Shown here in pieces: positions 18,976-56,823 of a stretch of 64,000 bases of DNA (positions are counted from its first letter, which is position 1; each line of letters begins with the position of its first letter). Below the pieces are notes generated by a model. That model was not told the origin of the DNA and did no database searches. It worked only from the letters and a program-made list of their open reading frames with translations. Source of the DNA: Macrostomum lignano (lineage: Eukaryota); the NCBI GenBank assembly GCA_002269645.1, contig NIVC01002652.1:1-64000 (forward strand), in the 5' to 3' direction. The position numbers and the translations under genes were made by a program.

Positions 18976-19349
18976 CTTGAACATTGTGCTAACCTGTGAT
19001 CGAATTGCATAAAGGCTTGACAGATGTCCTCTACGCAATTTATATGGAGCCTCGGGGAAAAATTTTGGCATTAAAGAAGTTCGTATTGATTAGCAGAAAA
19101 TTTGAAGCTTAATTATTATCTAAGTTAGGATGAGTTCAATCGATCACGTACTCCTTCTTTGATGTCAGCAACTCCCTCATCTGTACGCGCCCAGGCCTTT
19201 ACTTGTTGTTAATTTTAGTCTATTTTTACCTTCTGGCCATCAAAATTAGACAACCGAGCTGCCTCATATTGGAATTTCGACGCGTGCGTGCAAGTTTTGG
19301 AATTCATCTATAAGTATGTCATAGTAGTGCAGGGCTCGGTAACATTTTA

Positions 19350-19860: not shown

Positions 19861-20574
19861 ATTCGTGCCGAATTTCACCTCGGTCTTGGGTTCCATCTCG
19901 AATCTCTATCTCTCTGTTCATTTCCTGACTTTTCCTGCCGCGGCAGCTCTCTTATAATCAACTACCAGCTGTCTCTTCTTCATCGCCCAGCATCTTAAGA
20001 GCCGTCCCTTGTCCGCAGCCCACTCAGCCTCTACGCTACCCTGTCCGCGGTCTGTCATCAAGCAGAATTATTCAATTTTTCCTTCTTTTCCTTCCTAGCC
20101 GAGCTCTGCTCCCATCGGTTCTGTTTTGATCCCCCGTTTTGCGTCATAAATATCTCGGCTTCCTCTCGGGTTGCTGACAGCCGGGCGGGTCACGCTATTC
20201 TATCGAACTCGTACAACCTATCGTCAGCTTTGATTACCTTAGCTGCCTGTCCGAATACACTGCTGTAATTATTGATTATGAAGCGCTGAACAAACTAATG
20301 CATCATGACTGACTTGCTTCTGTACATAGCCTGCTGACATAACATTGTTTGTGTTGTTAAAAGTTCGTTCTTAGAAATGCCAGAATCTAAATACATGTTT
20401 TAATGCATATTTGACGGTTTAGTTAAGGCATGGATGTGACCTCCTCAGCTACTCCGAAATTGTTCACTGATCAGTTGGTTTATTGTGTTGCCTTCCACTG
20501 CTTCGAAGTTTCACATCGTCGGGAAGTTTTGAGAAAAGTAATTTTTTATTTACAAAACTTCATGGTGGCGCGCT

Positions 20575-23560
20575 TGTGAAGCTTCTGGTTTGTGAAGATT
20601 CGAGCTTGTGAAGATTCGAGCTTGAGACGACTCGAGCTTGTGAAGATTCGAGCTTGTGAAGATTCGAGCTTGTGAGGATTCGAGCTTGTAAATATTCAAG
20701 CTTGTGAAGATTCGAGCTTGAGACGACTCGAGCTTGTGAAGATTCAAGCTTGTGAAGATTCGGGTTTGTGAAAATTCGAGCTTGTGAAGAAAATTCAAGT
20801 TTGTGACAATTCGAGCTTGTGAAGATTCAAGCTTGTGAAGATTCGAGCTTGTGAGGATTCGAGCTTGTGAAGATTCGAGCTTGTGAAGATTCGAGCTTGT
20901 AAAGATTCGAGCTTGTGAGGATTCGAGCTTGAGACGACTCGAGCTTGTGAAGATTCGAGCTTGTGAAGATTCGAGCTTGTGAATATTCGAGCTTGTGAAG
21001 ATTCGAGCTTGTGAAGATTCGGGTTTGTGACAATTCGAGCTTGTGAAGATTCGAGCTTGTGAAGATTCGAGCTTGTGAGGATTCGAGCTTATGAAGATTC
21101 GAGCTTGTGAAGATTCGAGCTTGTGAAGATTCGAGCTTGTGAGGATTCGAGCTTGTGAAGATTCGAGCTTGTGATGATTCGAGCTTGAGACGACTCGAGC
21201 TTGTGAAGATTCGAGCTTGTGAAGATTCGAGCTTGTGAAGATTCGAGCTTGTAAAGATTCGAGCTTGTGAGGATTCGAGCTTGAGACGACTCGAGCTTGT
21301 GAAGATTCGAGCTTGTGAATATTCGAGCTTGTGAAGATTCGGGTTTGTGACAATTCTAGCTTGTGAAGATTCGAGCTTGTGAAGATTCGAGCTTGTGAAG
21401 ATTCGAGCTTGTGAAGATTCGAGCTTGTGAAGATTCGGGTTTGTGAAGATTCGAGCTTGTGAAGATTCGAGCTTGTGAAGATTCGAGCTTGTGAAGATTC
21501 GGGTTTGTGAAAATTCGAGCTTGTGAAGAAAATTCAAGTTTGTGACAATTCGAGCTTGTGAAAATTCGAGCTTGTGAAGAAAATTCAAGTTTGTGAAAAT
21601 TCGAGCTTGTGAAGATTCGAGCTTGTGAAGATTCGAGCTTGTAAAGATTCGAGCTTGTGAGGATTCGAGCTTGAGACGACTCGAGCTTGTGAATATTCGA
21701 GCTTGTGAATATTCGAGCTTGTGAAAATTCGAGCTTGTGAAGATTCGAGCTTGTGAATATTCGAGCTTGTGAAGATTCGAGCTTGTGAATATTCGAGCTT
21801 GTAAAGATTCGAGCTTGTGAGGATTCGAGCTTGAGACGACTCGAGCTTGTGAAGATTCGAGCTTGTGAAGATTCGAGCTTGTGAATATTCGAGCTTGTGA
21901 AGATTCGAGCTTGTGAAGATTCGAGCTTGTGAGGATTCGAGCTTATGAAGATTCGAGCTTGTGAAGATTCGAGCTTGTGAAGATTCGAGCTTGTGAGGAT
22001 TCGAGCTTGTGAAGATTCGAGCTTGTGAATATTCGAGCTTGTGAAGATTCGAGCTTGTGAAGATTCGGGTTTGTGACAATTCGAGCTTGTGAAGATTCGA
22101 GCTTGTGAAGATTCGAGCTTGTGAATATTCGAGCTTGTGAAGATTCGAGCTTGTGAAGATTCGAGCTTGTGAAGATTCGAGCTTGTGAAGATTCGAGCTT
22201 GTGAAGCTTCGGGTTTGTGAAAATTCGAGCTTGTGAAGATTCGAGCTTATGAATATTCGAGCTTGTAAATATTCAAGCTTGTGAAGATTCGGTTTTGTGA
22301 AAATTCGAGCTTGTGAAGAAAATTCAAGTTTGTAACAATTCGAGCTTGTGAAGATTCGAGCTTGTGAAGATTCGAGCTTGTGGGGATTCGAGCTTATGAA
22401 GATTCGAGCTTGTGAGGATTCGAGCTTGTGAAGATTCGAGCTTGTGATGATTCGAGCTTGAGACGACTTGAGCTTGTGAAGATTCGAGCTTGTGAAGATT
22501 CGAGCTTGTGAGGATTCGAGCTTGTAAAGATTCGAGCTTGTGAGGATTCGAGCTTGTGAAGATTCGAGCTTGTGAAGATTCGGGTTTGTGACAATTCGAG
22601 CTTGTGAAGATTCGAGCTTGTGAAGATTCGAGCTTGTGAAGATTCGAGCTTGTGAAGATTCGAGCTTGTGAAGATTCGGGTTTGTGAAAATTCGAGCTTG
22701 TGAAGAAAATTCAAGTTTGTGACAATTCGAGCTTGTGAAGATTCGAGCTTGTGAAGCTTCGGGTTTGTGAAAATTCGAGCTTGTGAAGAAAATTCAAGTT
22801 TGTGACAATTCGAGCTTGTGAAGATTCGAGCTTGTGAAGATTCGAGCTTGTGAAGCTTCGGGTTTGTGAAAATTCGAGCTTGTGAAGATTCGAGCTTATG
22901 AATATTCGAGCTTGTAAATATTCAAGCTTGTGAAGATTCGGGTTTGTGAAAATTCGAGCTTGTGAAGAAAATTCAAGTTTGTGACAATTCGAGCTTGTGA
23001 AGATTCGAGCTTGTGAAGCTTCGGGTTTGTGAAAATTCGAGCTTGTGAAGAAAATTCAAGTTTGTGACAATTCGAGCTTGTGAAGATTCGAGCTTGTGAA
23101 GATTCGAGCTTGTGAAGCTTCGGGTTTGTGAAAATTCGAGCTTGTGAAGATTCGAGCTTATGAATATTCGAGCTTGTAAATATTCAAGCTTGTGAAGATT
23201 CGGGTTTGTGACAATTCTAGCTTGTGAAGATTCGAGCTTGTGAAGATTCGAGCTTGTGAAGATTCGAGCTTGTGAAGATTCGAGCTTGTGAGGATTCGAG
23301 CTTATGAAGATTCGAGCTTGTGAAGATTCGAGCTTGTGAAGATTCGAGCTTGTGAGGATTCGAGCTTGTGAAGATTCGAGCTTGTGATGATTCGAGCTTG
23401 AGACGACTCGAGCTTGTGAAGATTCGAGCTTGTGAAGATTCGAGCTTGTGAAGATTCGAGCTTGTGAAGATTCGAGCTTGTGAAGATTCGAGCTTGTGAA
23501 GATTCGAGCTTGTGAGAATTCAAGCTTGTGAAGCTTCGGGTTTGTGAAAATCAGAGCTTG
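20575..23560. repeat. 3-kb 16-bp satellite with higher-order variants
   Basis: Unit GAAGATTCGAGCTTGT, with recurring variant blocks GAGACGACTC and GAAGAAAATTCAAGTTTGTGACAA. Confidence 0.97.
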
Positions 23561-24569: not shown

Positions 24570-25835
24570 CTAGCGCCGTCCGCATGTCAGAATCCGGCGG
24601 AACGCCTGTCTGAAGTCCTTGTTGAACACCGTGTAGATGACCGGGTTCAGAGCGCTGTTGCAGTAGCCCAGCCAGAAGAAGAAGTCGAATAGGATCAGCG
24701 GCACGCAGCCGCAGAAAATGTCCGTCAGGTAGGTGGTGAAGAAGGGGAACCAGCAGAGCACGAAGGCGCCCATGATGAGGCCCAGGACGAGGGTCGCCCG
24801 GCGCTCCCGGGCTCGCGCCAGTCGGCGCTTCTGCCGCAACGCCGCCTCGGCTGCCGACATGGCCTTCGGGGCTGCGGACTGCGCCGCTTCCACCGCAGCG
24901 GTCTCGCCCGAGTCCATCAGCTGCTCGTCGGGTTCGACATCCGGTTCGACATCCGGTTCGACATCCGGTTCGACATCCGATCGAGCTCCGTCTTCGACGG
25001 CGTCGGCGTTGGAGGCGCGCTGTTGAAGCCGCCTAACAGAGCGTCGCAACGCGTCGACATTTCGCTGCGTCGATGTCGCCGCCGCAGCGGCTGCCGTCGC
25101 TGACGTCGACAACGGCTGAGGCGGGCAGCGCCGGCGGGCGTGGCGTCTGGCGGTGCGGAAGATCCTGGCGTACACGAACAGCATGATGAGCATGGGGATG
25201 TAGAAGCTGCCCATGCTGCTGTACATCACGTAGCCGATGTCTGTGGTCAGTTCGCACCTGTCCGGCCGGGCCTGCGGCTTCCGCCAGCCCAGCAGCGGCG
25301 GCAGGCAGATGGCGGCGGACAGCAGCCAGACGACGCCAATCATCCCGGCGGCCCGCCGCGGCGTCCTCCTCCGCGGATACGTGAGCGCCTTGGAGACGCT
25401 CCAGTAGCGGTCTAGGCTGATGAGGCACAGGTTCATGATGCTGGCCGTGCACGCCAGGACGTCGATGGCCAGCCACAGCTCGCACCAGCGGACGCCGAAC
25501 ACCCAGGCGCCCAGCAGCTGCTTGACCAGGGAGAACGGCATCACCAGCAGGCCCAGCAGGAGGTCAGCGAAGGCCAACGACGCCAGGAACCAGTTCTGCA
25601 CACTGGACACCTTGCGGTCGCGTGCAATGGCCGCGATCACCAGCAGGTTGCCGAGGACCACCAGCGTCCAGATGATCAGCACCGCCAGGATGATTGCGGC
25701 GGCCGCGACCGGCGGGTACTGCAGCTGGACTAAGGCGAGGAACTCGTCTTCTCCGAGGGCTGCGGAGGCAGTGACGCCGCTAGTGTTTGAGGCCAGCGAG
25801 CTGGCCTGCCGCTGCGAATGCTGGTGCGGCGACAT
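24570..25835 (-). CDS. Intronless class A aminergic GPCR, alpha2-adrenergic-like / alpha2-type octopamine receptor (421 aa)
   Basis: Single ATG-initiated ORF with 7 hydrophobic segments. Motifs: GN in TM1, SLAFAD, TM3 Asp (AIDVLACTASI), DRY, TM5 SSMGSFYIP, RERRATLVLGLIMGAFVLCWFPFF, FFWLGYCNSALNPVIY. The TM6/TM7 pattern matches what I recall of alpha2-type receptors. Confidence 0.9.
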   Translation of the reverse strand: MSPHQHSQRQASSLASNTSGVTASAALGEDEFLALVQLQYPPVAAAAIILAVLIIWTLVVLGNLLVIAAIARDRKVSSVQNWFLASLAFADLLLGLLVMPFSLVKQLLGAWVFGVRWCELWLAIDVLACTASIMNLCLISLDRYWSVSKALTYPRRRTPRRAAGMIGVVWLLSAAICLPPLLGWRKPQARPDRCELTTDIGYVMYSSMGSFYIPMLIMLFVYARIFRTARRHARRRCPPQPLSTSATAAAAAATSTQRNVDALRRSVRRLQQRASNADAVEDGARSDVEPDVEPDVEPDVEPDEQLMDSGETAAVEAAQSAAPKAMSAAEAALRQKRRLARARERRATLVLGLIMGAFVLCWFPFFTTYLTDIFCGCVPLILFDFFFWLGYCNSALNPVIYTVFNKDFRQAFRRILTCGRR

Positions 25836-35193: not shown

Positions 35194-37640
35194 TCAATGC
35201 AGTTGGAATCTCGGATAGGCCAGGTTCAGCGCGGCCGTTGCCGCCTCCTCCTCCAAGTCCTGCAGCTCGCCCCGGCGATGCAGCTGAAGTTCGCTGCCAC
35301 CACCGCTGCCCCCCAGCAGGTGGCCTCCAATCTCACGGCCTGGCAGCAGCAGCAGGTCCTGCAGAGAGCGCCGGCCGCTGCTGCCTCGGCCCGGCGGTCG
35401 GGCGGTCCCGTAGCTCGAGTCCATGGCCGCCGCCGCTGCAGCAGCCGCAGCCGCCGCGGCCAGAAGCAGCGGGCTGGGCAGCGACAGCTCGCGATTGCCC
35501 AGGCGGGCGATAATCCTGGCCCGGCGGACCCGTTCGAAGTGCTTCGTCTTGTAGGCCTCGTAGAAGCCGTTGCCAGAGCAGCTCGGCGAATCTTCGTTGT
35601 TGGCAAAGTTTCGTCGAAGCAGCACCCGCCAGACGGAGCTGTCGCGGTGCAGCTCGGCCAGGAGCCGGCAGGTTTGGCCCAGCCGGCAGACCTCGACGCA
35701 GCTGTCGCAGCGGCGCAAGATTTGCAGCAGCAGCTCGGGCGGCAGGCAGACGAGGCTGGGCTGGGGAGGCGGTCGGCCGTTCAGCTCGAACAGAGCCGTC
35801 CTGGCGGGCAGGGCGATCTGCGTTTGCGGAAAAGTGACGACTCTTGTCCATGCACCGAAGATGGATGAGGCTTAGTCTAGGAAAATCGAAAAATCATCTC
35901 ACAACTAGCGGGTGCTGCAATTCTACCCATTTCGCTGACTTTGTGCTTCTGGCCCTCACGGTTGGATGAACAACCCTGACCAATATTTGTGCGCCAGCCC
36001 CAAATTAATGAATTGAACCAGTCCGATGAAAACGGTACCTAGGTCAAGAAGCGTCCCAGAGTAACTTGAGTCTCCCCAGAGTCGTTTCAGAGTCGTTGCA
36101 GGTAACACAGGTAAAATAGAAAAGAAGTGACTCTAGACGACTCTAAAACGTCAAGATGTCACGGTACAGGTTGCGAAAAAGTCGTCTAAGGCGTTTTTTT
36201 TATTTGAGGCATTTTATTCTGCGACTTTGAGACGACTCTGGGGCGACGCAAGCTTCCATAATGACTTAGGGGTCGTAGAGTCGTATTTGAGGCGTGCTTA
36301 AAGTCGCTGTAAATTTAGGCCTAAAGCGTATATGCATTAGAATCGCATTTCGCATTTACAACAGCTCTATTTAGTCTACTTAAGTTAGTAGTTCAAAGTT
36401 AAGCGCCAACACAACTACTCTGGGACGACTTTTTCGCGACTCTTACGATTCTGTAACTCACGTGACGCGCACGTGACTCAACAGTCGCCTCTCAGTTGCA
36501 AGTGAGTTGTTCACAATGACTCACTAGCGATTCTTGTCATGGTAACGTTTTCAACGGGCAGGGGTCGTGGCGGGATAGTCAAGTGCTACAGCCGCTGAGC
36601 TTCACTGCTCCTAAAGGCGAGTTCACATTACCGCCGGTAGCTTCGCGGGCCAAACTCAAATGAATTCTAAAATGGGTCTGAACCAACTGCTACATTGGTT
36701 TGAACAATCTTTGACCCCGCGGAGCTACTGGCGGTAATTTAAACCGGCCTTAATGCGTCCAAACACCTAGCTTAGCTCGTTATGTTTCCGGGTTTCGTGC
36801 ATAAATAGAGCGCGACTACTGTAAGTAGTATTTTGAAAAGTTCTTCGGGTACTTTTAGTACTTCCGACTTAAATTACATCGCGCTTGTAACTTTTTCTTC
36901 CAAAGCTCAGATCTACTTACTATTAGCAGATGTAACAAGGGCTTTTTGTAAATATTGTCGGTACAGTCAATTGACTTGAAACTCACCCCATCCTTGAACT
37001 TCATGCTCAACTCCCGCTGGTTCAACAGTCGAACACTGGCCGAGGCCGGGTCGCTGCCAAAGTACCTGGCCACGACGAGGTGCTGGGATGCGCAGGCTGA
37101 CGCTGGCAGGTTGTCAGCCGGTGCAACGCCGCAGTGACAGCCGACTTGTCCGCCTTCGTTCAGCAGCTTCAACAGTGCGTAGCCTTCAAGTTGGTCAGCA
37201 GGGCGATGCCGGTAAGAGTAGCGGAGCGCCACCGAGACGGCGGGCTGGCAGCCGAGCTGTCGGAGCTGCTGGACCACCGACGACGGCAAGTCAAAGTGGG
37301 TCAGCCTTGCGGACTCATTCTGATCGGTTCCTGAATAACTTGCGCCTGCCAGTTGCGGGGTCACCCGCAGTGCGTCTAGTTCCGTCTTTATTATCGATTG
37401 GTCATCCGGGTTGTCTTCGAAGTCCGGCTGCGACCGCTGTTCAGCTTCTTCGGTCTCTGCGTCCTCGCCCGCGGCTGTAAATCCGCACTCCGCCATCAGG
37501 CAGTGCAGAGTGAGCAGCAGCCAGTGAAACTGACTCTCCGGGCGGAGGTCTGCTACCAGGCGACTCAGCGATGGACAAAGTTGGCCATCTTCTGTGCAGA
37601 TTTCCGACACCTCCTGGGGGAGTTGGTGCGACCTCGCCAT
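35194..37640 (-). CDS. FBXO7/nutcracker-like F-box protein (FP-type dimerisation domain + F-box)
   Basis: Two coding exons, 37640-36987 (ATG in cacaATGG; donor GGG|gtgagt) and 35817-35194 (cag|ATC; TGA), joined in phase 0. Gives LLLTLHCLMAECGF ... LSMKFKDG|IALPARTALFELNG-PPPQPSLVCLPPELLLQIL...VWRVLLRRNF, matching the FBXO7 order FP domain - FKD - F-box (LPxEL...W). An alternative upstream in-frame ATG lies at 37733. Confidence 0.78.
36615..36750. mobile_element. 136-bp MITE with imperfect TIRs and TAA target duplication (PIF/Harbinger-like) in the F-box gene intron
   Basis: taa|AGGCGAGTTCACATTACCGCCGGTAGCTTCGCGGG ... CCCGCGGAGCTACTGGCGGTAATTTAAACCGGCCT|taa. The arms are about 35 bp, and a 23-bp core matches at 21 of 23 positions. 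Confidence 0.7.
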
Positions 37641-37874
37641 TGTGCTGCATGCAGCCAGGCAACAGACTGTGCACTGCGCCAAATAGGCCAGTGTAATTTC
37701 CAAACCAATATCTACAAAGTCACTGTTACTCATTTTAGAAGTTAACTTTCTCCATAGACAAAAGACTCGCCACTTCTCTTCCTCGAAATCAGCTGTTAGA
37801 GATCGTAGAGGAAGTAATCGAGTTGCAACCTTTTTATTTGGGAAGTTTTATTTGACAAAAATAGCATACTTCAT

Positions 37875-38382
37875 TGAATCACCAGTGACTGAAGCCCACC
37901 CGTGACTGAAGCTCACCAGTGACTGAAGCCCACCCCGTGACTGAAGCCCACCCGTGACTGAAGCTCACCAGTGACTGAAGCCCACCCCGTGACTGAAGCC
38001 CACCCGTGACTGAAGCTCACCCGTGACTGCAGCCTACCCGTGACTGCAGCCCACCCGTGACTGCAGCCCACCCGTGACTGCAGCCCATCCGTGACTGAAG
38101 CCCACCCCGTGACTGAAGCTCACCCGTGACTGAAGCTCATCCGTGACTGTAGCCCACCCGTGACTGCAGCCTACCAGTGACTGAAGCACACCCGTGACTG
38201 AAGCTCACCCGTGACTGTAGTCCATGACTGCAGCCTACCCGTGACTGTAGCCCACTTGTGACTGTAGCCCACCCGTGACTGCAGCCTACCCGTGACTGAA
38301 GCAAACCCGTGACTGTAGCCCATCCGTGACTGAAGCTCACCCGTGACTGCAGCCCACCCGTGACTGCAGCCCACACGTGACG
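37875..38382. repeat. 17-bp minisatellite between the divergent F-box and AChBP-like genes
   Basis: Unit CCCGTGACTGCAGCCCA / CCCGTGACTGAAGCTCA. Confidence 0.9.
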
Positions 38383-38768
38383 GTGTGTTGAAACTCATTT
38401 TAATTATTTGTTCCAACAATAAAAATTGAAAAAAATTATATTTAATTTTATTGAATCGCTTTAGAATTTACATTTTAAATAAAAAATATAGGCAGATCTG
38501 TAAAACTAGCCAACTCAGAACAAAGAATTTCCTGATCCCATTTTTTAACTCGTCTTTCTTTCAGTGCTCTTTGTTGACAAAATGCTTGGACTGTGAGCTC
38601 TCAGTTATTGATTTGTGGAGCAAAAAGAGCGAATTTAGCATTTTTGTTGGTTCATTTTCACACCTGAAGGTCATAGGCTTAGATAATAACTAGAAATGTG
38701 CACTGGAATTCATAAGGCTATGAATTCCAGTTCATAGGAAATTCATATGCTAAAATCAAAAGTAGGTC

Positions 38769-40623
38769 ATGAAGAATTCTCTTGCTCTCCTGCTGCTGCT
38801 GGCCGCGTCCACCTGTCTGGTGCAAGGTGATCTAACTTGAATGCTTTCGTAACTATTTTATGCTTCTGAGCAGTTTGAATTCAAACTTCATTGTTGCTTT
38901 GTCATGCCATCGCTTTAGGCCAATCCGATGAAGACCGACTTGCGAGCTACCTGCTGAGGCGGTTGGGCAAAACCGGCTCCATCGCTCGGCCTATCGCTCC
39001 CGGCAACGGAAGCCAGGCGGTGGACTTGTCTCTGGGCCTGTCTCTGCTGCGAGTGGCGTCACTGAAGGAATCGTCTGCTGAGATGGACGTGTGGATCCAG
39101 ATGGTGAGAGAAATCTCTTCACACTCGAGCGTAGGTGGGGGCCCAGGACGATTGGAGGTTTCGTGTGAAGGGGTTGCTGACGGAGAAACCGGGACAGAGA
39201 TGTGTCCGCAGCGTGGTCCCCCTCCGGAGAGTCCAGCAGGTGGATGGTTGCTCGCCCGGTAGCCCTTCGGTAGCGGACGAGCTGGCAGAGATTCTCGGGC
39301 CTGAAAACGTGGGAGACTCTCTTATTCTCAATCGCCACTCCGCAGTTCTGGAAGGACCCGAGACTCAGCTGGGACCCGGCCGAATTCGGTGGTCTGAGCC
39401 AGATCGCCCTGCCCTCCAATCTGCTGTGGATTCCGGATGTTCGACCTTTCCATGCGTAAGTGTCTCGTGACAGGCTTCTAAGATAAAGCTTCCATCTGCC
39501 CGCTCTGCTCCATCATTACAAGTATTCCCTCCGCCACCCGACCACCTCAGCGGGAACTACATACCGGACCGGGTCTCCCCAGTCCGAGTGGTCGCCATGA
39601 GCAGCTCTGACGTCATCTACGTACTGCCGGCCAGGCTGCGGGCTCCCTGCGACCGTCTGCGAAACAAGTCGATGAGCTGCCGCCCGGTGCTGGGCAGCTG
39701 GGTGTACAGCGGCCTCTTGCTGAACGCGACGCTGAGCTCCAGCCCCTTCAATATCGCCGATTTTGAGCCTCTGGCCGGTTGGGAAGTGGCCAGAGCCACC
39801 GCCAAGAGGGTCGAAACCTACTACGATTGCTGCCCGGAGCCCTACATCTCCATCAAATACAGCCTTGTGTGAGTAAACCCTACATCTCCATCAACTACAG
39901 CCTTGTGTGAGTAAACCCTGCATCTCCATCAACTATACAGCCTTGTGTGAGTAAACCCTGCATCTCCATCAACTATACAGCCTTGTGTGAGTAAACCCTA
40001 CATCTCCATCAACTACAGCCTTGTGTGAGTAAACCCTGCATCTCCATCAACTATACAGCCTTGTGTGAGTAAACCCTGCATCTCCATCAACTATACAGCC
40101 TTGTGTGAGTAAACCCTACATCCCCATCAACTATACAGCCTTGTGTGAGTAAACCCTGCATCTCCATCAACTACAGCCTTGTGTGAGTAAACTGACAGAC
40201 GAATACTCCAGAATGCCACATAGTTCTTTATTCTTTAGCAGAAAAAACCATCTATTCACAGAATGTGCGTTGTAGTCTACTCCTTGGGCGAAGATAAAGA
40301 GTAGGCAATTAGCGAATTTTCACGCCACGGTCGCAAGTTTACAATGCGCCTAATTACGATCGTGGGCCAACGTATTTATGCACTTGAATCCTGGCTTCAA
40401 TGCATTTTAAACTTTGCTAATTGCCTACTCTTAATCTTCACTAAAAGAGTAGGTTATAACACATTTAACGCAATATTTTGTGCATTTTGTAAGGAAACTC
40501 GAATTGGTGTCTTGTCGGTGAACCATGCTGCCCCCCGCAAATATTCACAGGCTCGACAAGAAGCGCAAGGGCAAGGATGGCAAGGGCAAGGGCAGGCCTC
40601 GCGGAGAAGAAGATGATGACTGA
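38769..40623 (+). CDS. Secreted acetylcholine-binding-protein-like Cys-loop ligand-binding domain (about 247 aa, no transmembrane domain)
   Basis: Exons 38769-38826, 38919-39103, 39346-39455, 39551-39868, 40551-40623 total 744 nt, with consistent phases. Signal peptide MKNSLALLLLLAASTCLVQG, then DEDRLASYLL, DVWIQMFWKDPRLSWDP, WIPDV, PC-x9-C, GSWVY, YYDCCPEPY, and a charged tail VLDKKRKGKDGKGKGRPRGEEDDD*. AATAAA at 40655. Confidence 0.85.
39840..40192 (+). repeat. 38/40-bp tandem repeat derived from an exon-intron junction
   Basis: Unit CCCTACATCTCCATCAACTACAGCCTTGT|GTGAGTAAA, 9 copies. The first copy is the real end of exon 4 plus its donor. Confidence 0.95.
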
Positions 40624-40953
40624 TGAATCTCGAAGACTGCCAAACTTTGATCTCAATAAACGTCTCAAGCTAACAATATTAAACAATCGGAGATTTTCTT
40701 GAAAAAATAAATCGCAATGCCACCAAATAGATTAAGATGTCTTGAAACTGCACAACTACGAGCTTCCAATTACTCCAGACCCGACTCCAAGTCTCAAGTG
40801 GTACTTTTGTACTTTAGCGCATATGTCGCTTACCCCATAAGCTTGACCAGATGTCAAGACTTTTTAAGCTAAATAAATTCTCCAAAATTTCTGAATAAAT
40901 TGTCAACACTACAATACAAGAATAATAAAACCTGTAATTGACTACACCTTTCC

Positions 40954-41210
40954 TAATGGGCAGAGGTGCAACCGACAGCTTCTGAAGGCTGCGTACGGCT
41001 GTTCAGTCCAAGGACTGAGGGGTCGCCACACACCCTCAATTACCCCAGCTAATGCTGGCACCCATTTTACAGCTGGGTGAACTGAAGCAATGCAGAGTTA
41101 AGTGTCTTGCTCAGGGACACAAATTTCTCCGAGTGGATCGAGAATCGAACCCCCGACCTTTGTTAGGTAGAATCGAAGTCGTGAGTCCGACGCTCTGACC
41201 ACTGGGCTAC
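40954..41210 (-). mobile_element. tRNA-derived CORE-type SINE, copy 2
   Basis: Nearly colinear with 31212-31478. It carries a short extra segment in the tRNA head (near 41160-41180) and lacks about 24 nt near the 3' end. Confidence 0.8.
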
Positions 41211-42392
41211 TGCAACCCACTCCTAGGCTACAACACTGCATGCTATAAACGTCAAATCCAATTATCAGTAGCGTTTTTAACAAAAAAGATTTAAAAAGAT
41301 GTCCAGAGCCTTTGTTAGGTAGACAGTAGTATAGCTAACTTTTTACTTGCAAATATGTGAAAAACGCAAAAAAGACGAACTAGCTAAAATTGTGACTGCG
41401 CCGCGCCAATGCAAGCTTCCAAACTGTCCTGTGCGCTTAAATAAGTTTTGTCAGTGGGGCAGAGCGCGCAACCGTATTGTCGAAGAATTGTGCGAGAATA
41501 AGGATTGCACTGTTGCGGCCCAGCAGTCCAACGCATTTGGTGCCGCATCTGTGTGTCGCAACGGGCTGCTTCAAAGAGCAAAGAGAGCTAATCAATAACT
41601 TCAGTCGATAGTCAGAATTCTAGGAAACGATAGTCAGAAGAGGGCAGAAATCGAGACCTGACTCACATTATGTACAAGGAAATTTGTAAGCAATGGACCA
41701 AGAACCAGTTGGGGTCAGTCACAATCTTCGGCAGATGCTTCTATTGAAAACATGCGAATTGAAAAGCAACACTGTGCTGCAGCGGGAGCAAAGCTAAGCA
41801 CGGGACGGTGCAGGAGAGGCTGCTGGTGTACCGATTAGAAAGCTGGCGATGCGCTCAGCATACTGCTACAAGTAGCTAAGGCAGTAAGACTGACCGATTT
41901 AATAAGCATTTTATGCGCACAGTTTTAAAAACCTTTGCAGAAGGTGTTTTACAAAGTCGAAAGATTAAATGATCGCTAGGGAGAGCTTTGGTCAGTTAAA
42001 TAAACCAAAACATGAAGGCGAAATCAGCATTGGATTTGCAGCTTATCAAGTGCAGGCAGGTTTGCAAACTTCAGCGGTTCTTTGGTAATTCGGGAGGCGC
42101 TGAAGCAGACAGTTACAGATCAGGCTTGGTCTGACTGCAGTTGTCTCTCAGCGTCTGCAGGACCTCCGGGTCTCTCGTTGCGCTGTCAAACGAACGGTTT
42201 TGATGAGGACTCGCGCACAGGCAAGGCGCCTCTCGGAGCAGTACCGAGCTCAAATGTATGTCACATCAGAGCCCGGAAAACTCTCAAGAAGACGCTCTAC
42301 TAGGAGCTAACAGGCGAAGAACACCGGAAGTCCTACTACTACTACTAGTATACATGTACATGGTCAACAACAGCGCAGAGTTGGTCGGAGGG

Positions 42393-48300: not shown

Positions 48301-51300
48301 TTTTCCCCGACGCCCATTTAGTTTGCATTAATCCATCTGAATCTCGCGACAGGGAGTTTTCCTCCAAACCTAGATATCTGTTCTCTTATTCCTGTGCTGG
48401 CCAAATATTGAAGCAGCGATATGAGAGGCTTGAAGGTGAGTAGGAGGGCGGAGAGGTCTCTAGGCCCGCGGCTTATCACAGAAATCTCAAACATGAACTT
48501 GCCAGCTACGTAATCTGCCAGTTGCTGCTGCATCCGCAGCCCAGCATCCACGCGCGCGCGCCATAATTTAATTAGCTGCGCCCCTCAAGAGCGGCCGGAG
48601 CCCCTTTTTTCTGCGCTGCCTTACATGATATGAAAATATCAATGAAATATTGACTTTGCCACCAAGGTTTGGGCCAATAGTGCTTGATGAAGCCGAACTA
48701 TTGCATGTATTGCGGGTGCTTTCAGCTGCGCTAAGTGTAAAACCTTGTCATGATGTTTGGATGCAGAATAACTGGGAATTTGGTGTTTTAAATGCTAACC
48801 TGCTGAGTTGACTGGGATCAGGATACTTGCTAGAAATTGGGTGTTACTAAGATGATGGTTGAGCAATGTGCTCAGCAGACGGACGGGCTGCTCAGCTGAA
48901 GTATTTTCCTAGAAAGCATCAAAACAGTGGCCAGTGAATGAGATTCCGCCTGCTCAAAACCACAGCACATGAAGGCATCGCTTATGAAAGGAAATCGATT
49001 GGATAAAATTCGATTCGAACTGATGGCCGGAGTTGGGAAATAATTGTGCGAAGGGTCGATGGGGATTAGGGACAGATGCCCGCCGGATCGACGGCGCCGC
49101 TGTTAGAACAATCCCTCTTGAGACCCGGCAGTGCCGGCCGTCTGCGATCTGTCTTGGGAATTTCTACTCAGAAGCAATTATTGCAAACTACTGAAAATTT
49201 GCTGCAGAAGAAATAATTAACAAAATGAGTTCAGACTGGGAGGGATTAACGGGGGGTTGATCTCGGGTATTGGTAAATCTGACGATAAGCTTTGCTAGGC
49301 CGCTTGCCCAGTTCTCTAAATTGAGCCGGCTGAGCTGCGAGTCGCCCCCGAGACCCATGCTGGCATTTTTCCAACACAGTTTCTTGTCAGTGACACCTTC
49401 TTTGCGAAACATTTCCTAGGCCTGTTCTAGTAAGGAATACGCTCGGGCAGACAGGCACTGAGACAGGCACTGAGACGGGCACTGAGACAGGCACTGAGAC
49501 AGGGCACTAAGACAGGCACTGAGACAGGGCACTAAGACAGGCACTGAGACAGTCACTGAGACAGTCACTGAGACAGGCACTGAGACAGTCACAAAGACAG
49601 GCACTGAGACAAGCACTGAGACAGGCACTGAGACAGGGCACTAAGACAGGCACTGAGACAGGGCACTAAGACAGGCACTGAGACAGTCACTGAGACAGTC
49701 ACTGAGACAGGCACTGAGACAGTCACAAAGACAGGCACTGAGACAGGGCACTAAGACAGGCACTGAGACAGGGCACTAAGACAGGCACTGAGACAGTCAC
49801 TGAGACAGTCACTGAGACAGGCACTGAGACAGTCACAAAGACAGGCACTGAGACAAGCACTGAGACAGGCACTGAGACAGGGCACTAAGACAGGCACTGA
49901 GACAGGGCACTAAGACAGGCACTGAGACAGTCACTGAGACAGTCACTGAGACAGGCACTGAGACAGTCACAAAGACAGGCACTGAGACAAGCACTGAGAC
50001 AGGCACTGAGACAGGCACTGAGACAGGCACTGAGACAGGCACTGAGACAGGCACTGAGACAGGCACTGAGACAGGCACTGAAACAGTCACTGAGACAGTC
50101 ACTAGAACAGGCACTGAGACAGGCACTGAGACAGGCACTGAGACAGGCACTGAGACAGGCACTGAGACAGGGCACTAAGACAGGCACTGAAACAGTCACT
50201 GAGACAGTCACTAGAACAGGCACTGAGACAGTCACAAAGACAGGCACTGAGACAGGCCCTGAGACAGGCACTGAGACAGGCACTGAGGCAGGCACTGAGA
50301 CAGGCACTGAGACAGTCACAAAGACAGGCACTAAGACAGGCACTGAGACAGGCACTGAGACAGGCACTGAGACAGGCACTGAGACAGGCACTGTGACAGG
50401 CACTGAGACAGGCACTGAGACAGTCACAAAGACAGGCACTGAGACAGTCACAAAGACAGGCACTGAGACAGGCACTGAGACAGGCACTGAGACAGGCACT
50501 GAGACAGTCACAAAGACAGTCACAAAGACAGGCACTGAGACGCCACAGCAGACTCACTCTGAGATGCCGCTCCAGCGAGTGGATGAAGGCCTTGAGGCTC
50601 TCGGGCTCATACTCTTGGCCGTCCTTCTTCCTGGCCTGACTGACGAACTCCCGCAGGTGCTCGTCCAGCTCATCGGGCGGAATGCTCTGAACATCGCGCT
50701 GGTCGCCGCGCACCTGCTGAATAAAGCGGCAGATGACCTTCATGTCCGACTTGGTCTTTCGCATCGTGTTGTGCACCCCGACGACTCCGGCGGCCCCGAT
50801 GCCTCCCCCGCCCGGGCTGTTGTTGTTGGCGGCGTCGGCTGCGGCGGCAGCGGCTGCGGCGGCGGCGGTGACGGCAGCGGATGAAGAAGTCGATGAAGAT
50901 GAAGAATTGTTGCTGACGGGGTTCAGCGGCTGGCCGTCCCGGAGCTGCTGAGGCCGAGCTCGGGGGCTGTGAGACGACTTGGCGACGCCTCCTGTTGTTG
51001 AAGCAATGAGTGATTTGAGATTAAGATGAAAGTGGCAGAGTCCAACCCGAACTCTAACACTGGTTTCAGTATATGGATTCAGGTCATCTTCAGGCCGTCC
51101 TGGATGCTGACAGCGGGGCTATAGGAGCGGCTTGGGCGCAAACAAGTCAGGAACAGCTGGTTCCCGCTTATTCTCACTTAATCGCAACCGAACTTTTTTC
51201 AACTGACAAAAATAACAAAAAACACAAGCGATTTTAAGCTAGCGAGGCTCCATAAAGCTGAAAGGAAGCGACTCGGAAGTCCGTGATGCAGCTGATAGAC

Positions 51301-54300
51301 AGTCGATGCAAATGACAAAGGGAAAAAGCTGACAACAATATTTCGGCCTGAGCAGACAGCCGGGCACCAGCAGTTTCCCCATTCAACTCAGTCAGAGGGA
51401 TTTTCTACTTTTTCGGGAAAGTCATCAGCTTCATCAGGTTTCCCAGATTTTTTAGAAACTAATCAACACTACCTGGAAGCCAGGGGGTGCTTGAGCTGCT
51501 GCGAATTGGTTGATAGGACAACTGCAAGGTGCGGATCGGAGACTGAGCCCTCCCGCTATGATATAAAACCCTAGGGTAGAAAAAGCCGAGCAGAGCAGCC
51601 GGAAATTCCCCGGAAATTCCCCGCAGGCTCACCGAGCAGCGGAGCAGCCGGCGGAGCGGCGCCGCCCGCTGACGCGTCTCCGCCAAGTCCGGACTCGGAG
51701 CCCGCCGGGCTGTCCACCGCCTGTGGCTCCAGCGGCGGTGGCGGCAGCGGCGGCGGTGGCGGGACTGGCAGCTGCGGCTGAGGCGGCAGTGACGGGAGCG
51801 AGGCCGGTTTTCTACCTTCCGCAGCGGCCGCGGCGGCGGCAACCGCGGAGGGCCCGAAGCCGTGCGCGGCTGTCATGTGGGCCTCCAGCTGGCGCAGGCT
51901 GCGGGCTGGCGAGCCGCAGATCAGGCACTGGAAGTCAGGCAGGACGCCGCCTCCTCCGCTGGCTGCCGCGGCGGCCGCCGCCGCTGCCATCAAGCCGAAA
52001 TGCGGCGGCGGCGGCGGAGGAGGCGGCGGCGGAGGCGGCGGTGGTGGCGGCCCGAGCGGTGGCGGGTGCGCATGCTGGGGGAACCCGGACGCGCCGCCCG
52101 ATGTGACGGCGGCAGCGGCGGCAGCAGCGGCAGCGGCCGCAGCAGCAGCGGAGACTGGGACGGGGCGGCTCAAGCCAGCGGCTGCGGCGGCCATGTGCGA
52201 CATCGGAAAGTGCAGGACCTGGATGTGGGTGCTGAGGTCCTCGGAGCACTGGCACAGCGCCTTGCACAGGGGGCAGGCGATCCCGCGCAGCTCCTGACAG
52301 GCGTTGGCGGCCTTCTGGTGCTGCAGCAGCTGCTGGTGCCACGCCTTGTCCAGCTGGGTCCCGTTCGCCAGGCCCGGCCGCCCGGTGAACTTGCGCACCG
52401 TGTCGCAGCACTCGATGATGTTGGCGTGCTGGAATGAACAAATTTTCAAAGTGGCCCTGAGCACCATCTGAAACTCAAGACCATCCTCCTCTTCTTTCTC
52501 AACGATATCGCATTCTGTCTGAGAGCTATTCTCAGTGGCTGTGTGAGTGTTGAATGACAGCAACTGGTCTGAGCCCGATATTAATTATCTGTCCGACTTT
52601 TTTCTCACCCAGAGCAGTCGTTTCCTATCGCATCAAAAAAGCAAGACAAGGTAAATCAAGCGGCTGTGTGTTTTTTTTCAGTCAGTGGCAAGAACAAAAG
52701 AGGGATCAAAGAGGGACTCTGGTCCCCTTTGAGTCGGGCATTTGATACTTTGAGTTGCCATCTCTTCCATTTGGTTTTTGTCGATTATTCAATTGAGCAA
52801 CCTGAGCTGATGAAGGAACTCCCCCCTTCCACCAAATTGGAGATTTGAGGATAAATTAACAAAAACAATTTCGGGCTGGGGTGGAGGGTCAAGTTCTGTT
52901 TTGAGTTTGCGGATCAATGGAACAGGCCGTGAAATCTCGGGAGCTCTGAATCTGCAGCAATATCGCCCCAATTATTTGATAGAGAAATCAACCGCTAGGA
53001 AGCGGAATGCGAAAAGCTGCTTGCTCCCCAGCCTCTTCCCCATCGGTTCAGTTTTTGTTGCTTCAAATTTTTGATGCAGACCCCCCTCCCTCCCCTCTAT
53101 CTCCGCTTCCCGGTCGCGTTTAATTGGGAGAAGAAGCTGGAGGAGCCTTATTAGAGCCTCATCAAGACACAGGAGAGGGTTGGAAGCAACGAGACGAGAC
53201 TTGGGCAGTTTAGTGAGGAACTGAGCCCGATCCGGGGGGAAACAATGCATTGTACGGCCCAGCTTTGCGAGAACAAAAACTGAAGGAACTTGGGGGGCTC
53301 ACAGCTCAAGAATGAGAAAAGGAAGGAGACAGCTTCCTTGCAAGCCCCATCACTCCAGCTTCCTTGGTCGCGGGGGGTGGTGGGAATAATACGGAGATGA
53401 GAGTTTGTTGGGGATCACGCGATGAGGAACAGACAGAGAGTCCCAGGGCAGATATGGCTTTTCAGTTCTCAAGCCCGCTGTTGTCAATCAGTCTCACACA
53501 GGGCAGTGGGGAAGCCGCCGCATCCAACAAATAATTTGCAAAGCATCTGTGGTAGTAGAAAGATGGCGACCCGAAATTCTTCTAACTAATGGCCGCCACA
53601 CCTTTTATAGCACCGGCTGCTCCTCGGCATCAGTGCTAATGGCCCCCCGTATTCACCTGCTCATTTATTCACCCACCATCTATGCTCAGATTATTGTAGT
53701 GACGGCCCGAATTCGCTGGAGAATAATTTTGGTGCGATCTCACATTGAAGGGCTAGTCAATTCACTGTAGGCTCTATAGGCTGTGAGGTCTATCGGCTTT
53801 AGAGTCTAAAGGCTCTGAAGGTCACTGAAGGTCTAGTTGGAGCTCTAAAGGCTCTGACGGTCACTGAAGGTCTACTTGGAGCTCTAAAGGCTCTAACAGT
53901 CACTGAAGGTCTACTTGGAGCTCTAAAGGCTCTGACGGTCACTGAAGGTCTAGTTGGAGCTCTAAAGGCTCTGAAGGTCACTAAAGGTCTACTTGGAGCT
54001 GTAAAGGCTCTGACGGTCACTGAAGGTCTAGTTGGAGCTCTAAAGGCTCTGAAGGTCACTGAAGGTCTAGTTGGAGCTCTAAAGGCTCTGACGGTCACTG
54101 AAGGTCTACTTGGAGCTGTAAAGGCTCTGACAGTCACTGAAGGTCTACTTGGAGCTCTAAAGGCTCTGACGGTCACTGAAGGTCTAGTTGGAGCTCTAAA
54201 GGCTCTGACAGTCACTGAAGGTCTACTTGGAGCTCTAAAGGCTCTGACAGTCACTGAAGGTCTACTTGGAGCTCCAAAGGCTCTAACGGTCATTGAGAAG

Positions 54301-54540
54301 GTTTTGGTCCCTTCCACGTGGCACTCACCTTGACTTTCCTATGGTAGATCTCACGATGGTCCTCCATGATCTCCCGGCTGGTGCTGATAGCCTGGCAGAC
54401 GCTGCAAACGTACGTGAAGTACTTTGGCGGCTCATCCCGCAGGCTGCACGGAAAATGAGTCTCGAACTTGTGCAGGTTCAGCGTGGTGTAGGCGCATTCC
54501 GGACAGCGGACGAAGTGCACCCAGGGCTGCGACTGTGGCT

Positions 54541-54571
<31 letters not shown>

Positions 54572-54628
54572 TTGTTGTTGTTGGGGCGACGACGGCGGCG
54601 GCTGCTGAGCCTGCGGCTGCTGCTCCAT
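42393..54628 (-). CDS. Zinc-finger protein fused to a Crypton-type tyrosine-recombinase-derived (DUF3504-like) domain, about 754 aa
   Basis: Exons 54628-54329, 52428-51633, 50991-50558, 47694-47512, 43292-43068, 42719-42393 all have GT-AG ends and are in frame (2265 nt). Fingers: CPEC-x12-H-x2-C, CSVC-x12-H-x4-H, CPLC-x12-H-x4-H, CLIC-x12-H-x4-H. C-terminal half: NTMRKT...ELDEHLREFVSQARKKDGQEYEPESLKAFIHSLERHL...LFNSGLLGTDSPQALLNTLWF...HFCVRGTSRH...FKIYTNLRP...PFYL...AWFK, typical of ZMYM/QRICH1/KIAA1958/Crypton domains. Confidence 0.82.
42825..43058. repeat. 16-17-bp minisatellite
   Basis: ATAAGGGACTGTGCTC units. Confidence 0.9.
43520..44010. repeat. 16-bp minisatellite
   Basis: Unit TTCATATCTCTGAAAC. 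Confidence 0.9.
47045..47455. repeat. 17-bp minisatellite
   Basis: Unit TGTTACATCTTCCGCTG. Confidence 0.9.
47995..48216. repeat. 12-bp minisatellite
   Basis: Unit GGCACTGAGACA. Confidence 0.95.
49450..50540. repeat. 12-bp minisatellite, same unit as 47995-48216
   Basis: GGCACTGAGACA with GTCACAAAGACA variants. Confidence 0.95.
53800..54295. repeat. 39-bp minisatellite
   Basis: Unit GGTCACTGAAGGTCTAGTTGGAGCTCTAAAGGCTCTGAC. Confidence 0.95.
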
Positions 54629-56823
54629 CGTTGTTGCTAAGCTTGAGTAGGCGGGAATTGGCAGGAGCAGGCCGAGAGGTGCTGCGCCGAACTGCAGTGG
54701 GAAGTTTGCTGCTGCTGCTGCTGCTCCCGGAGTCGCTTGTAACTGTAGCTGATCCACTCTGCAGCTCTTGGCCTTGCTCTGCCGGTCGAGTCGGTGGCGC
54801 TGGCGCTGGCGGAGTTATCTGAAACGGTTCAAGTGCAGACGCGCTGCAGCAGCCTTGAGCCCGTCACTGGGGGGGGGGGGGGGCAGAGGCGGTAGTGAAG
54901 GGGACGCGGAGAGTGAAGGAGGCTCTGGGGGAGCAATAACAGAGTCGTGCATTATTCAAATTATCGGATCGGGTCCGGCGCGCACCGCAACCCCGGGCGG
55001 CTGATGGTTACAAAACAGTCCCCTCCAGTTCCTTCTTCCTTCGCCTCACACCTGGCCCATCATCATAAAGAAAAGGGAGGCTGAACAGTAAGAACAGTAG
55101 GAGCCTTGAACAGGACCGCGAGGCGTGTTGGCTCAGCAAAGTTTTCCTAGCATTAATTCTATATCGCGGCGCTGGACTTAGAGAGGGATGGGGAAATAAC
55201 TCCCGCCTGGAGTGGGCATTGATTTTTCAAGACTCCGCTTTTGACACCTCTGCTGCAACAGACCCCTGTGCTTGCCGACTTCTCCTAGAGGCCGCACCGC
55301 CGCTCAGGTCAATACAGGCAGGCTGCTGGTTACGCAATCAAACAATTGAGCAGCCGGGAGCTTGCAAAACAATGCGCAAGTTTTTCTCTGCTTCCTGCTG
55401 AATGCAAAGTTTCCTTTTTTAAACAGCAGACAAGCTTTTTTTTCCGTGTGAGATATGCTCCTTCTAGGAGGAAGCCAGGAAACCCAGCTGGTCCTGCAGA
55501 GACCCAACTAACTACACCCAATTTATTCTCCCAGAGCCTATTCCATTTTCACGGGTAATTCAAAATTCATGGACAAATGAATTGGTGGCTCTGCTGTCTC
55601 CCTACCTCTCTTCTCTCCTCTGCAGTCTTGTTCAAGTTTTTCCATGCCTTGGCCTCTCCTTTCATTATCGTTAAGGATTTTGCGGCTCTGATACGAGAGA
55701 CTGCTGGGGCTTGAGAACAGAGGAAGCTGCGGACAAAACACCCCGCTGCTATCCCTCCTCCCGACCCCACAGCCCGGCTCAGGCTGGCTCCGCCTTGAAA
55801 TTCTTTTATTCTATTCTCGGGCTCTTCCTAAGTCGCTTCCTCCTTCTCTGTGGTGTCTTTGTATTCATGTGTGGGTGTGCAGTCCCTCCGCCACCATTCA
55901 GGCCGGAGTTGAATGCTGCTGCTGCTGCTGCTGCTGCTATGATGATGTCGATGTTAAAGTAAGTTGCTTGCCAATGAGGAGTGTAAAAAACTGACTTTAA
56001 AACCAATTTCTTTCTTTCCGCCTCTTTCTGGGGCTCCTAGCATTGCTGGGCGGCCCGCTCCGCTCCTTCCCCCTCCCCACACACACCGGGGTCTCCTTGA
56101 CGCGGGTCTCCTGCGGAAGCGGGGGTCTCACTACTCACCACTCACTCACTCACCGCAGGAGAGGGCCCAGAGGCAGCGCAGACAACAGACTGGGCCATGC
56201 AGAAAATGGCATAAAAAATTAACTAATAATTTTCTATCAATTCACCAACCCCAATTACAAATTTTGCTCAGAGCAAAAGCAGAAAATGCCTTCTATAGTT
56301 TACTCTCTTTTTTCACCTCAATACAATTCAAGCTTTTTCAGGCCCTGCGCAGCACAAGGCATGTCTTGACAAAGCCACTGACAGAGCGTGATACACAATA
56401 AGCGCAGCCCCACGCAGTGACGCCGATTACACTCTGTCGGAGTTGTTGAGATGCTCCACTGTGGTTGGGGGCGAATGCTATCAGGAATACAACCCGGATA
56501 AATGTTCGTAACCCCCCCCCCAGTAACCATCTGTTTTATCAAGTGGATCGATTCTGTTAGTCTAGTTGACGCAAAAGTTGTGGCCAACCCTTAATGGATC
56601 GGTTTGACAGTCCTCTTGCGAAAGTTATCTTCTGTGCCCGGCTTTTATCTTTCAGTGACAAAATTGGCTCTTTGCCTCCCAAGCAGATTTAAGCTTGCAG
56701 ACGTGAATAATATTTTCATATCTGTCTGGCTAAAGCAAGCAATGCGCTTCTTCCCATTATATTTTGGGCAGCGAATCGTTACCGCAAATTCCTCCAGCCC
56801 CGAAGGGATCAGCCCCGATCGCT

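Follow-up and report, generated by a model that had tools for sequence, protein, structure and literature searches.

Introduction

Acetylcholine-binding proteins (AChBPs) are the workhorse structural surrogates for nicotinic acetylcholine receptors (nAChRs), and studies of what they do in the living animal have dealt mainly with the pond snail Lymnaea. The molluscan proteins (Ls-AChBP of Lymnaea, Ac-AChBP of Aplysia, Bt-AChBP of Bulinus and that of Pleurobranchaea) consist of a signal peptide and one ligand-binding domain (LBD) of ca. 210 residues, devoid of the transmembrane segments M1-M4. They carry an aromatic cage, vicinal cysteines in loop C, a Cys-loop that lacks the FPFD motif and is not 13 residues long, and a short basic stretch directly after strand beta10. 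All these traits are shared by the product of a gene of the flatworm Macrostomum lignano described here, which is located at 38769-40623 on the forward strand of contig NIVC01002652.1 (assembly GCA_002269645.1). The window analyzed comprises positions 1 to 64,000 of this contig, and coordinates refer to it throughout. Combined, the evidence presented below makes it probable that this is a functional gene for a secreted, channel-less protein of the nicotinic receptor family, of the AChBP type.

Published AChBPs come from gastropods, bivalves (ACCBP) and one annelid (PMC3423370). They include secreted LBD-only relatives with non-synaptic roles, namely ACCBP of Pinctada and Haliotis and the AChBP dodecahedron of Biomphalaria haemolymph (PMC3423370); unlike the bearers of ACCBP, flatworms are shell-less. 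Proteins of the AChBP type from annelids (Ct-AChBP of Capitella teleta and the uncharacterized CAH1796943.1 of Owenia fusiformis) are, like the M. lignano protein, LBD-only proteins of a non-molluscan spiralian; the annelid comparison was made with the Owenia sequence. In the literature searched, no AChBP was described for a flatworm, for Platyhelminthes or for Macrostomum. An initial annotation, made from the letters of the window alone, had placed the gene in a lineage different from those of known AChBPs, and this was correct, Platyhelminthes being neither molluscs nor annelids, yet lying inside Spiralia/Lophotrochozoa. Its statement that AChBPs are best known from molluscs and some annelids holds for the published ones, but domain-only relatives proved numerous in oysters, abalone, an annelid and amphioxus, which lessens the surprise of finding one in a flatworm.

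Gene structure

Splicing of candidate exons from positions 38000-41500 yielded a five-exon gene on the forward strand with a product of 247 amino acids. Exon 1 (38769-38826, 58 nt) opens with the ATG at 38769 and encodes MKNSLALLLLLAASTCLVQG, comprising the start codon and the signal-peptide-like stretch MKNSLALLLLLAASTCLVQ/G; it is followed by a phase-1 intron with donor AAG/gtgatc. Exon 2 (38919-39103, 185 nt), followed by a phase-0 intron, encodes the N-terminal helix, strands beta1-beta2 and, at its end, loop D (DVWIQM, containing Trp78 and Gln80). Exon 3 (39346-39455, 110 nt), followed by a phase-2 intron, encodes FWKDPRLSWDP...LWIPDVRPFHA, including loop A with Phe116 in place of the usual Tyr. 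Loop E, a short Cys-loop, loop B (GSWVY, with Trp168), loop F, loop C (YYDCCPEPY, with Tyr209, Cys211-Cys212 and Tyr216) and beta10 are all encoded by exon 4 (39551-39868, 318 nt). Exon 5 (40551-40623, 73 nt) contributes the charged tail (V)LDKKRKGKDGKGKGRPRGEEDDD and the stop codon TGA at 40621-40623. A putative polyadenylation signal, the sequence motif AATAAA, lies at 40655-40660, 32 nt past the stop. The four introns, of 92, 242, 95 and 682 nt, all conform to the GT-AG rule. The tail comprises 23 residues, is charged and rich in Lys and Gly, and ends in an acidic run (EEDDD).

The 3' end of exon 4 is peculiar in that its donor, GTGAGT at 39869, overlaps an in-frame TGA (39870-39872), at which the unspliced frame stops, as the initial annotation had pointed out. 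It is moreover the first copy of a tandem repeat with a unit of 38-40 nt that occurs nine times on the forward strand between 39840 and 40192, copy 1 being the true exon-4 end with its donor. In each unit, the 29 bases that end the coding part of exon 4 are followed by the in-frame TGA with the GTGAGT donor and by three further bases, and intron 4 holds eight additional copies of the donor at 39907-40180, one per intronic repeat unit. Splicing from any of these downstream donors would retain the TGA at 39870 in frame and so produce a protein without the tail. Translated, the intronic copies give ISINYSLV and a stop, with the Asn found in PAA75741 (P0005, a paralogue or allele), whereas the true exon has Lys.

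The absence of a channel-encoding part was checked over the whole window. When both strands of the 64 kb were searched by tblastn with the transmembrane region of alpha7 and with two full-length receptors, no transmembrane exon was detected; the best matches of the transmembrane queries had E-values of ca. 1 and lay inside minisatellites. The window contains no N, so an assembly gap cannot hide such exons, and the earlier observation that no M1-M4 exons precede the next gene could thus be extended to the entire gap-free stretch. Tblastn likewise detected no second copy of the LBD in the window, and it matched residues 225-250 of the deposited M. lignano protein P0001 to 40552-40620, that is, to the tail exon.

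Domain composition and predicted fold

The 247-residue protein is a single, complete Cys-loop LBD without a channel. It matched Neur_chan_LBD (PF02931) over profile positions 16-214 of 216 (E = 1.1e-24) and gave no match to the channel domain PF02932 in Pfam. The highest Kyte-Doolittle 19-residue window (1.48) sits in the N-terminal segment, no window reaches 1.6, and no hydrophobic segment was found by hydropathy after residue 20. The N-terminus, MKNSLALLLLLAASTCLVQG/QSDEDRL, has a Leu/Ala core behind a short, charged n-region, with small residues at -1 and -3, and in alignments the mature N-terminus that would follow coincides with the point where the N-terminal helix begins in AChBPs and nAChRs. 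The mature protein has ca. 25 kDa, three N-glycosylation sequons and an isoelectric point (pI) of ca. 8.9. Splicing, hydropathy and Pfam thereby bore out the signal peptide and the complete Cys-loop domain with DVWIQM, GSWVY and YYDCCPEPY that had been read from the letters, and the Lys/Asp-rich tail, the stop and the AATAAA were also found where they had been placed, at 40551-40623 and 40655.

By sequence, the closest solved structures were Aplysia AChBP and AChBP/alpha7 chimeras (E = 1e-26 to 1e-22), with alpha7 at the same level (E = 2e-22). An AlphaFold2 (AF2) model of the monomer, built from a 13-sequence alignment, had a predicted local distance difference test score (pLDDT) of 80.4 and consisted of an N-terminal helix and a beta-sandwich; it superseded a model from a 6-sequence alignment (pLDDT 68.6). 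The best Foldseek matches of the AF2 model were the extracellular domains of nAChR alpha9, alpha1 and alpha7 at E-values of ca. 1e-19 (e.g. 3e-19), with target-normalized TM-scores of up to 0.86 for alpha9 and alpha1. The protein thus shares the fold of nAChR alpha subunits (alpha7, alpha9, ACR-16-like) and their alpha-type vicinal cysteines, but differs from them in having neither a transmembrane domain nor an intracellular loop and in its Cys-loop, with 9 instead of 13 residues between the cysteines and no FPFD.

Residues of the binding site

In alignments, Trp78 and Gln80 of loop D, Trp168 of loop B, and Tyr209, Cys211-Cys212 and Tyr216 of loop C were conserved with alpha7 and AChBP. Positions Val132, Ile140 and Val142, which we take to be those of loop E from our own alignment to alpha7 and its numbering, are hydrophobic, as in Aplysia AChBP. 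The Cys-loop, C151-DRLRNKSMS-C161, is devoid of FPFD and has only 9 residues separating its cysteines. Identity to molluscan AChBPs is ca. 29-34%, and these differ from the M. lignano protein in having 12 residues instead of 9 between the Cys-loop cysteines and Tyr instead of Phe in loop A. The longer tail of the flatworm protein, Lys/Gly-rich with an acidic end and encoded by a terminal exon of its own, also sets it apart from them.

The more distant relative P0010 (46% identity; see below) lacks both Cys-loop cysteines and the loop A aromatic, and keeps the Trp residues of loops B and D and the YxCC...Y of loop C. Since P0010 has lost both cysteines, the Cys-loop disulfide appears dispensable in the soluble flatworm lineage.

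Copies, transcripts and selection

The 247-residue model is identical to a deposited M. lignano protein, PAA56211.1 (Mlig018664g2), annotated as hypothetical. The other M. lignano copies are PAA75741/PAA79548, PAA85864 (269 aa) and A0A1I8I0E5, which have a few residues changed or a slightly different tail; together the copies span 247-269 aa, have related tails and are named hypothetical or 'Neur_chan_LBD domain-containing'. Among deposited M. lignano proteins, P0001, P0005 and P0008 have related tails, as does the cDNA-derived P0002. This relative (67% identity) and P0010 are encoded by intron-less contigs of RNA type, 0.9-1.05 kb long, from SRA runs SRR28338164-166. In both, an uninterrupted open reading frame (ORF) is followed by a stop and a 3' untranslated region (UTR), with the same channel-less end. 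Because these cDNA contigs end alike, the truncated architecture is both transcribed and conserved in the relatives. They reach stop and 3' UTR right after the tail, so splicing into transmembrane exons, which would have contradicted the initial annotation, was not seen. Values of dN/dS were 0.23 against P0002 and 0.44 against P0010 (Nei-Gojobori method, with dS near saturation), which indicates purifying selection.

These data bear on whether the locus might instead be a pseudogene, a gene fragment or an artefact of annotation, as one could suspect given that the genome of M. lignano is very rich in repeats and underwent recent duplication and that a tandem repeat disrupts the boundary of exon 4 and intron 4. 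However, the frame is intact over five exons with canonical splice sites, the deposited model is identical and several copies are conserved, spliced transcripts exist in two relatives, dN/dS against P0002 is low and the predicted fold is confident. Intact frame, splice sites and dN/dS effectively refute such a reading, to which we attach next to no credence. Nor is the gene a chance assembly, given the identical deposited model and the same architecture in the cDNA of relatives. Judging by the relatives' transcripts and by purifying selection, it appears to be a real, expressed gene, and the objections of a hidden gap or of lack of expression, considered at the outset, found no support.

A widespread class of LBD-only proteins

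A word-indexed homology search returned 4 proteins only. When 1.84 billion representatives were searched exhaustively with HMMER, 3108 hits were obtained, of which the top 150 were used to compare classes. About half of these are LBD-only proteins of 200-265 aa in which the chain ends within ca. 50 residues after loop C and contains no hydrophobic segment. FPFD is missing from nearly all of them, and in most the Cys-loop spacing differs from 13, whereas nearly all channel-bearing proteins among the 150 combine the 13-residue spacing with FPFD. Named LBD-only members include a 'soluble acetylcholine binding protein' of Pleurobranchaea (P0017), 'alpha-like' predictions of Saccostrea and Haliotis, and proteins of Owenia and Branchiostoma. 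The LBD-only class is thus widespread, and the M. lignano gene belongs there in form. Outside M. lignano and the SRR28338164-166 transcriptomes, the exhaustive search detected no relative with more than 37% identity, and the profile-search matches listed, mostly arthropod, nematode and vertebrate receptors, contained no additional M. lignano paralogue.

The flatworm LBD scored 14.7 bits higher on a profile of LBD-only proteins than on a receptor profile. Masking of the Cys-loop left a margin of 10.7 bits, more than any of the 83 receptors reached in cross-validation (at most 7.8).

Receptor modulation by truncated or partial nAChR subunits is known from other animals, human CHRFAM7A being an example. 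By analogy, the M. lignano protein could act inside the cell, co-assembling with full-length nicotinic subunits in the endoplasmic reticulum (ER) and reducing or altering the receptors at the surface, and its complete extracellular domain with interface-forming loops would be suited to this. Against such a role, there is no membrane anchor and the C-terminus (EEDDD) has no ER-retention motif; the short, FPFD-less Cys-loop resembles that of freely soluble AChBPs and not that of a subunit packed on a membrane domain; and the profile test puts the protein in the soluble class. We therefore hold the role of an assembly modulator to be very improbable. The protein is, rather, of the same kind as the AChBPs of snails and annelids, already deposited though uncharacterized, and involves no new mechanism.

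Some top hits of the HMMER search were of unusual architecture (P0011, P0012, P0013, P0024 and P0080, as well as P0027, P0043 and P0069). Several are predicted proteins of 857-1215 aa with two to five tandem LBD or LBD-plus-channel units, and may be either gene-fusion artefacts or genuine multi-domain proteins. In addition, a few LBD-only proteins carry one terminal hydrophobic segment, suggestive of a glycosylphosphatidylinositol (GPI) or single-pass anchor.

Shared ancestry or independent truncation

Whether the flatworm gene is an orthologue of known AChBPs or an independent truncation was addressed with a tree and with gene structures. A neighbour-joining (NJ) tree was built from 182 LBDs with 200 bootstraps, leaving out the flatworm's own receptor repertoire. 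The phylogeny against AChBPs and nAChRs called for in the initial annotation resolved a Macrostomum clade (bootstrap 0.98-0.995) but not its deeper placement, all deeper nodes having values of 0.055 or less. Nominally the clade falls within a group of 39 leaves, 30 of them LBD-only, none a classed receptor and nine unclassified, at a node without bootstrap support. The nearest sequences by distance include the channel-bearing P0014 (L004, SRR31412048; 36% identity) and P0175. Together with P0040, these two are channel-bearing proteins with a 12-residue Cys-loop lacking FPFD that lie among the sequences nearest to the flatworm clade, and the soluble form may descend from a receptor lineage represented by them.

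Exact spliced mapping gave the exon structures of four further LBD-only genes. An intron at the end of the signal peptide is common to the genes of M. lignano, Saccostrea, Haliotis and amphioxus. The phase-2 intron after loop A is present in all five genes, and the 110-nt exon that it follows in M. lignano is also found in Owenia and, with the introns on either side, matches amphioxus. Two phase-0 introns around loop D distinguish the genes: one located 15 codons before the loop is absent from M. lignano and Owenia and present in Saccostrea and Haliotis, and one after the loop (IWLQM) is present in the former two and absent from the latter two; Branchiostoma has both. The intron after IQM81 in M. 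lignano is in the same position and phase as in the LBD-only genes of Owenia and amphioxus. The stop lies in the loop-C exon in Owenia, Saccostrea, Haliotis and Branchiostoma, preceded in the last by an extra phase-0 intron at residue 193; in M. lignano it lies in the 73-nt tail exon, which a phase-2 intron in Val224 separates from exon 4. This terminal intron falls where beta10 ends and, in receptors, M1 starts; it is unique to M. lignano among the five genes compared. In human CHRNA7, introns lie at the end of the signal peptide, after IWLQM80/S81 and, in phase 2, after loop A, as in M. lignano. Given these matches to amphioxus and to CHRNA7, the M. lignano gene is a bona fide member of the family and not a retrocopy.

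The Owenia gene CAH1796943.1 resembles that of M. lignano in having the same introns through loop A, then one long exon, and in the acidic C-terminal end of its product; it differs in the position of its stop, in a Lys-rich N-terminal extension and in an identity of only ca. 29%. In molluscs, by contrast to the canonical nAChR pattern of M. lignano, the AChBP genes of Biomphalaria are reported to share only intron 1 with nAChR genes (Saur et al., PMC3423370).

On these grounds the soluble protein may have arisen independently in the flatworm, by truncation of a macrostomid nicotinic subunit gene in which a small new terminal exon took the place of the channel exons, which would make it an analogue of AChBPs; we consider this a serious candidate, if one that falls somewhat short of being probable. 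The terminal phase-2 intron in Val224 at the start of M1 and the tail exon, which the oyster, abalone, Owenia and amphioxus genes lack, speak for it. So do the three upstream introns at canonical nAChR positions and phases, of which Biomphalaria AChBP genes are reported to share intron 1 alone (PMC3423370), the lack of any relative above 37% identity outside M. lignano and the SRR28338164-166 transcriptomes in the exhaustive search, and the channel-bearing P0014 and P0175 among the nearest sequences. On the other side stand the nominal position within the 39-leaf NJ group, though at a node without support, the closer match of the LBD to the LBD-only profile than to the receptor profile even with the Cys-loop masked, and the Owenia LBD-only gene, which up to loop A has retained and lost the same introns. 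Relaxed constraint could create LBD-only resemblances convergently, and neither side is decisive; the introns lean slightly towards a separate history of the flatworm gene, or of its 3' end. The more specific proposal, that a macrostomid AChBP evolved independently when a subunit gene lost its channel exons and a donor overlapping the new stop recruited a lineage-specific tail exon, is offered as a tentative one, more doubtful than the general scenario.

Putative mode of action

As an AChBP-type protein, the product would be directed into the secretory pathway by its signal peptide, and the mature Cys-loop LBD of ca. 25 kDa would assemble into a soluble homopentamer, by analogy with AChBPs and alpha7. 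At each interface, one face of the predicted cage would be formed by Phe116, Trp168, Tyr209, Tyr216 and the Cys211-Cys212 disulfide, and the other by Trp78, Gln80 and the hydrophobic Val132, Ile140 and Val142. Such a cage would be expected to hold a quaternary or protonated amine, either acetylcholine or another one (for instance choline or nicotinoid toxins), at five interface sites. In a protein without a pore, binding could only sequester or buffer the ligand, with no signalling output, and a short Cys-loop without FPFD would fit a lost need for coupling to a membrane domain. The variable tail, with Lys/Arg followed by Asp/Glu, probably forms a disordered appendage, and any part that it might play in matrix attachment or processing is speculative. 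A function as a decoy that binds acetylcholine or toxins, as first put forward, is thus suggested by the conserved residues of the binding site.

Several points weigh against this interpretation. The signal peptide was judged from hydropathy and by eye, and the literature searches turned up nothing on this protein. The Cys-loop, with its 9 residues, is shorter than in known AChBPs (12), and loop A has Phe116 where receptors and AChBPs carry Tyr, though the residue is still aromatic. Given the losses in P0010, ligand specificity inside the Macrostomum clade may not be cholinergic. Finally, some mollusc members are non-synaptic, such as ACCBP in shell formation and the haemolymph dodecahedron (PMC3423370).

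The same observations feed the alternative of a secreted LBD pentamer with a ligand other than acetylcholine, such as a different amine, an alkaloid from the diet or the environment, a peptide or a mineral phase, and a role in defence, transport or structure. ACCBP binds amorphous calcium carbonate, and Biomphalaria AChBP forms a 60-mer in haemolymph (PMC3423370). The substitution of Phe for Tyr in loop A, the variation of the binding loops within the clade, with P0010 devoid of the loop A aromatic and the Cys-loop disulfide, and the basic domain (pI 8.4-8.9) with its three N-glycosylation sequons would all be compatible with it. However, four of the five cage aromatics, the vicinal cysteines and the Trp and Gln of loop D are as in alpha7 and AChBP, and the fifth cage residue is still aromatic; loop E, as we read its alignment, is presumably hydrophobic like that of Aplysia AChBP. 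A non-acetylcholine ligand is accordingly judged unlikely, and an AChBP-type protein preferred.

Other features of the window

The window is packed with minisatellites, which generate long spurious ORFs (e.g. 8175-9700, 13520-14720, 15547-16684, 17761-19071 and 20550-22079). One of them, with a 17-bp unit CACCCGTGACTGAAGCC in ca. 30 copies at 37880-38381, lies ca. 390 bp upstream of the start codon of the AChBP-like gene. Directly upstream of this gene, on the opposite strand, a 292-aa ORF (36855-37733) gave no match in Pfam, and its exact sequence was absent from the protein collection searched. Farther upstream, exons on the forward strand at 4184-4675, 15021-15533 and 16626-16961 encode the C-terminal end of a protein kinase and a guanylate-kinase domain (Pfam E = 3e-7 and 2e-30), and look like parts of a CASK-like MAGUK gene that extends over 13 kb or more.

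A single-exon gene on the reverse strand (24570-25835) encodes a 421-aa G-protein-coupled receptor (GPCR) of the rhodopsin family (7tm_1, E = 7e-74), with the alpha2A-adrenergic and 5-HT1A receptors as best solved relatives (E = 3e-88). The idea of a cholinergic gene cluster was therefore rejected, the neighbouring GPCR being aminergic (alpha2-adrenergic/5-HT1A-like) and not muscarinic.

Downstream, reverse-strand ORFs at 51571-52563 and 54290-54757, rich in poly-Ala, poly-Pro and poly-Gln, contain C2H2-like zinc-finger motifs and probably belong to a transcription-factor gene; their sole Pfam match was a weak one to Zn_SUZ12 (E = 2e-4). The N-terminal 75 residues of another reverse-strand ORF (50102-50776) match QRICH1 (E = 6e-6), the remainder being an SACL/SVPV minisatellite. 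A tRNA-derived short interspersed nuclear element (SINE) was suspected downstream, but ARAGORN found no tRNA-like gene.

Implications

A flatworm gene of the AChBP type extends the LBD-only architecture to Platyhelminthes. Together with its bivalve, abalone, annelid and amphioxus relatives, it makes channel-less nicotinic domains a widespread invertebrate class instead of a mollusc oddity. The terminal intron and the tail exon, both unique to it, make it suitable for studies of how a receptor subunit loses its channel half and, should the independent origin be true, soluble acetylcholine-binding decoys would have arisen repeatedly in animals. M. lignano is transparent, and RNA interference and transgenesis are established in it, so that in this tractable host the hypotheses of a synaptic buffer and of a toxin decoy would be open to testing in vivo by knock-down and transgenesis.

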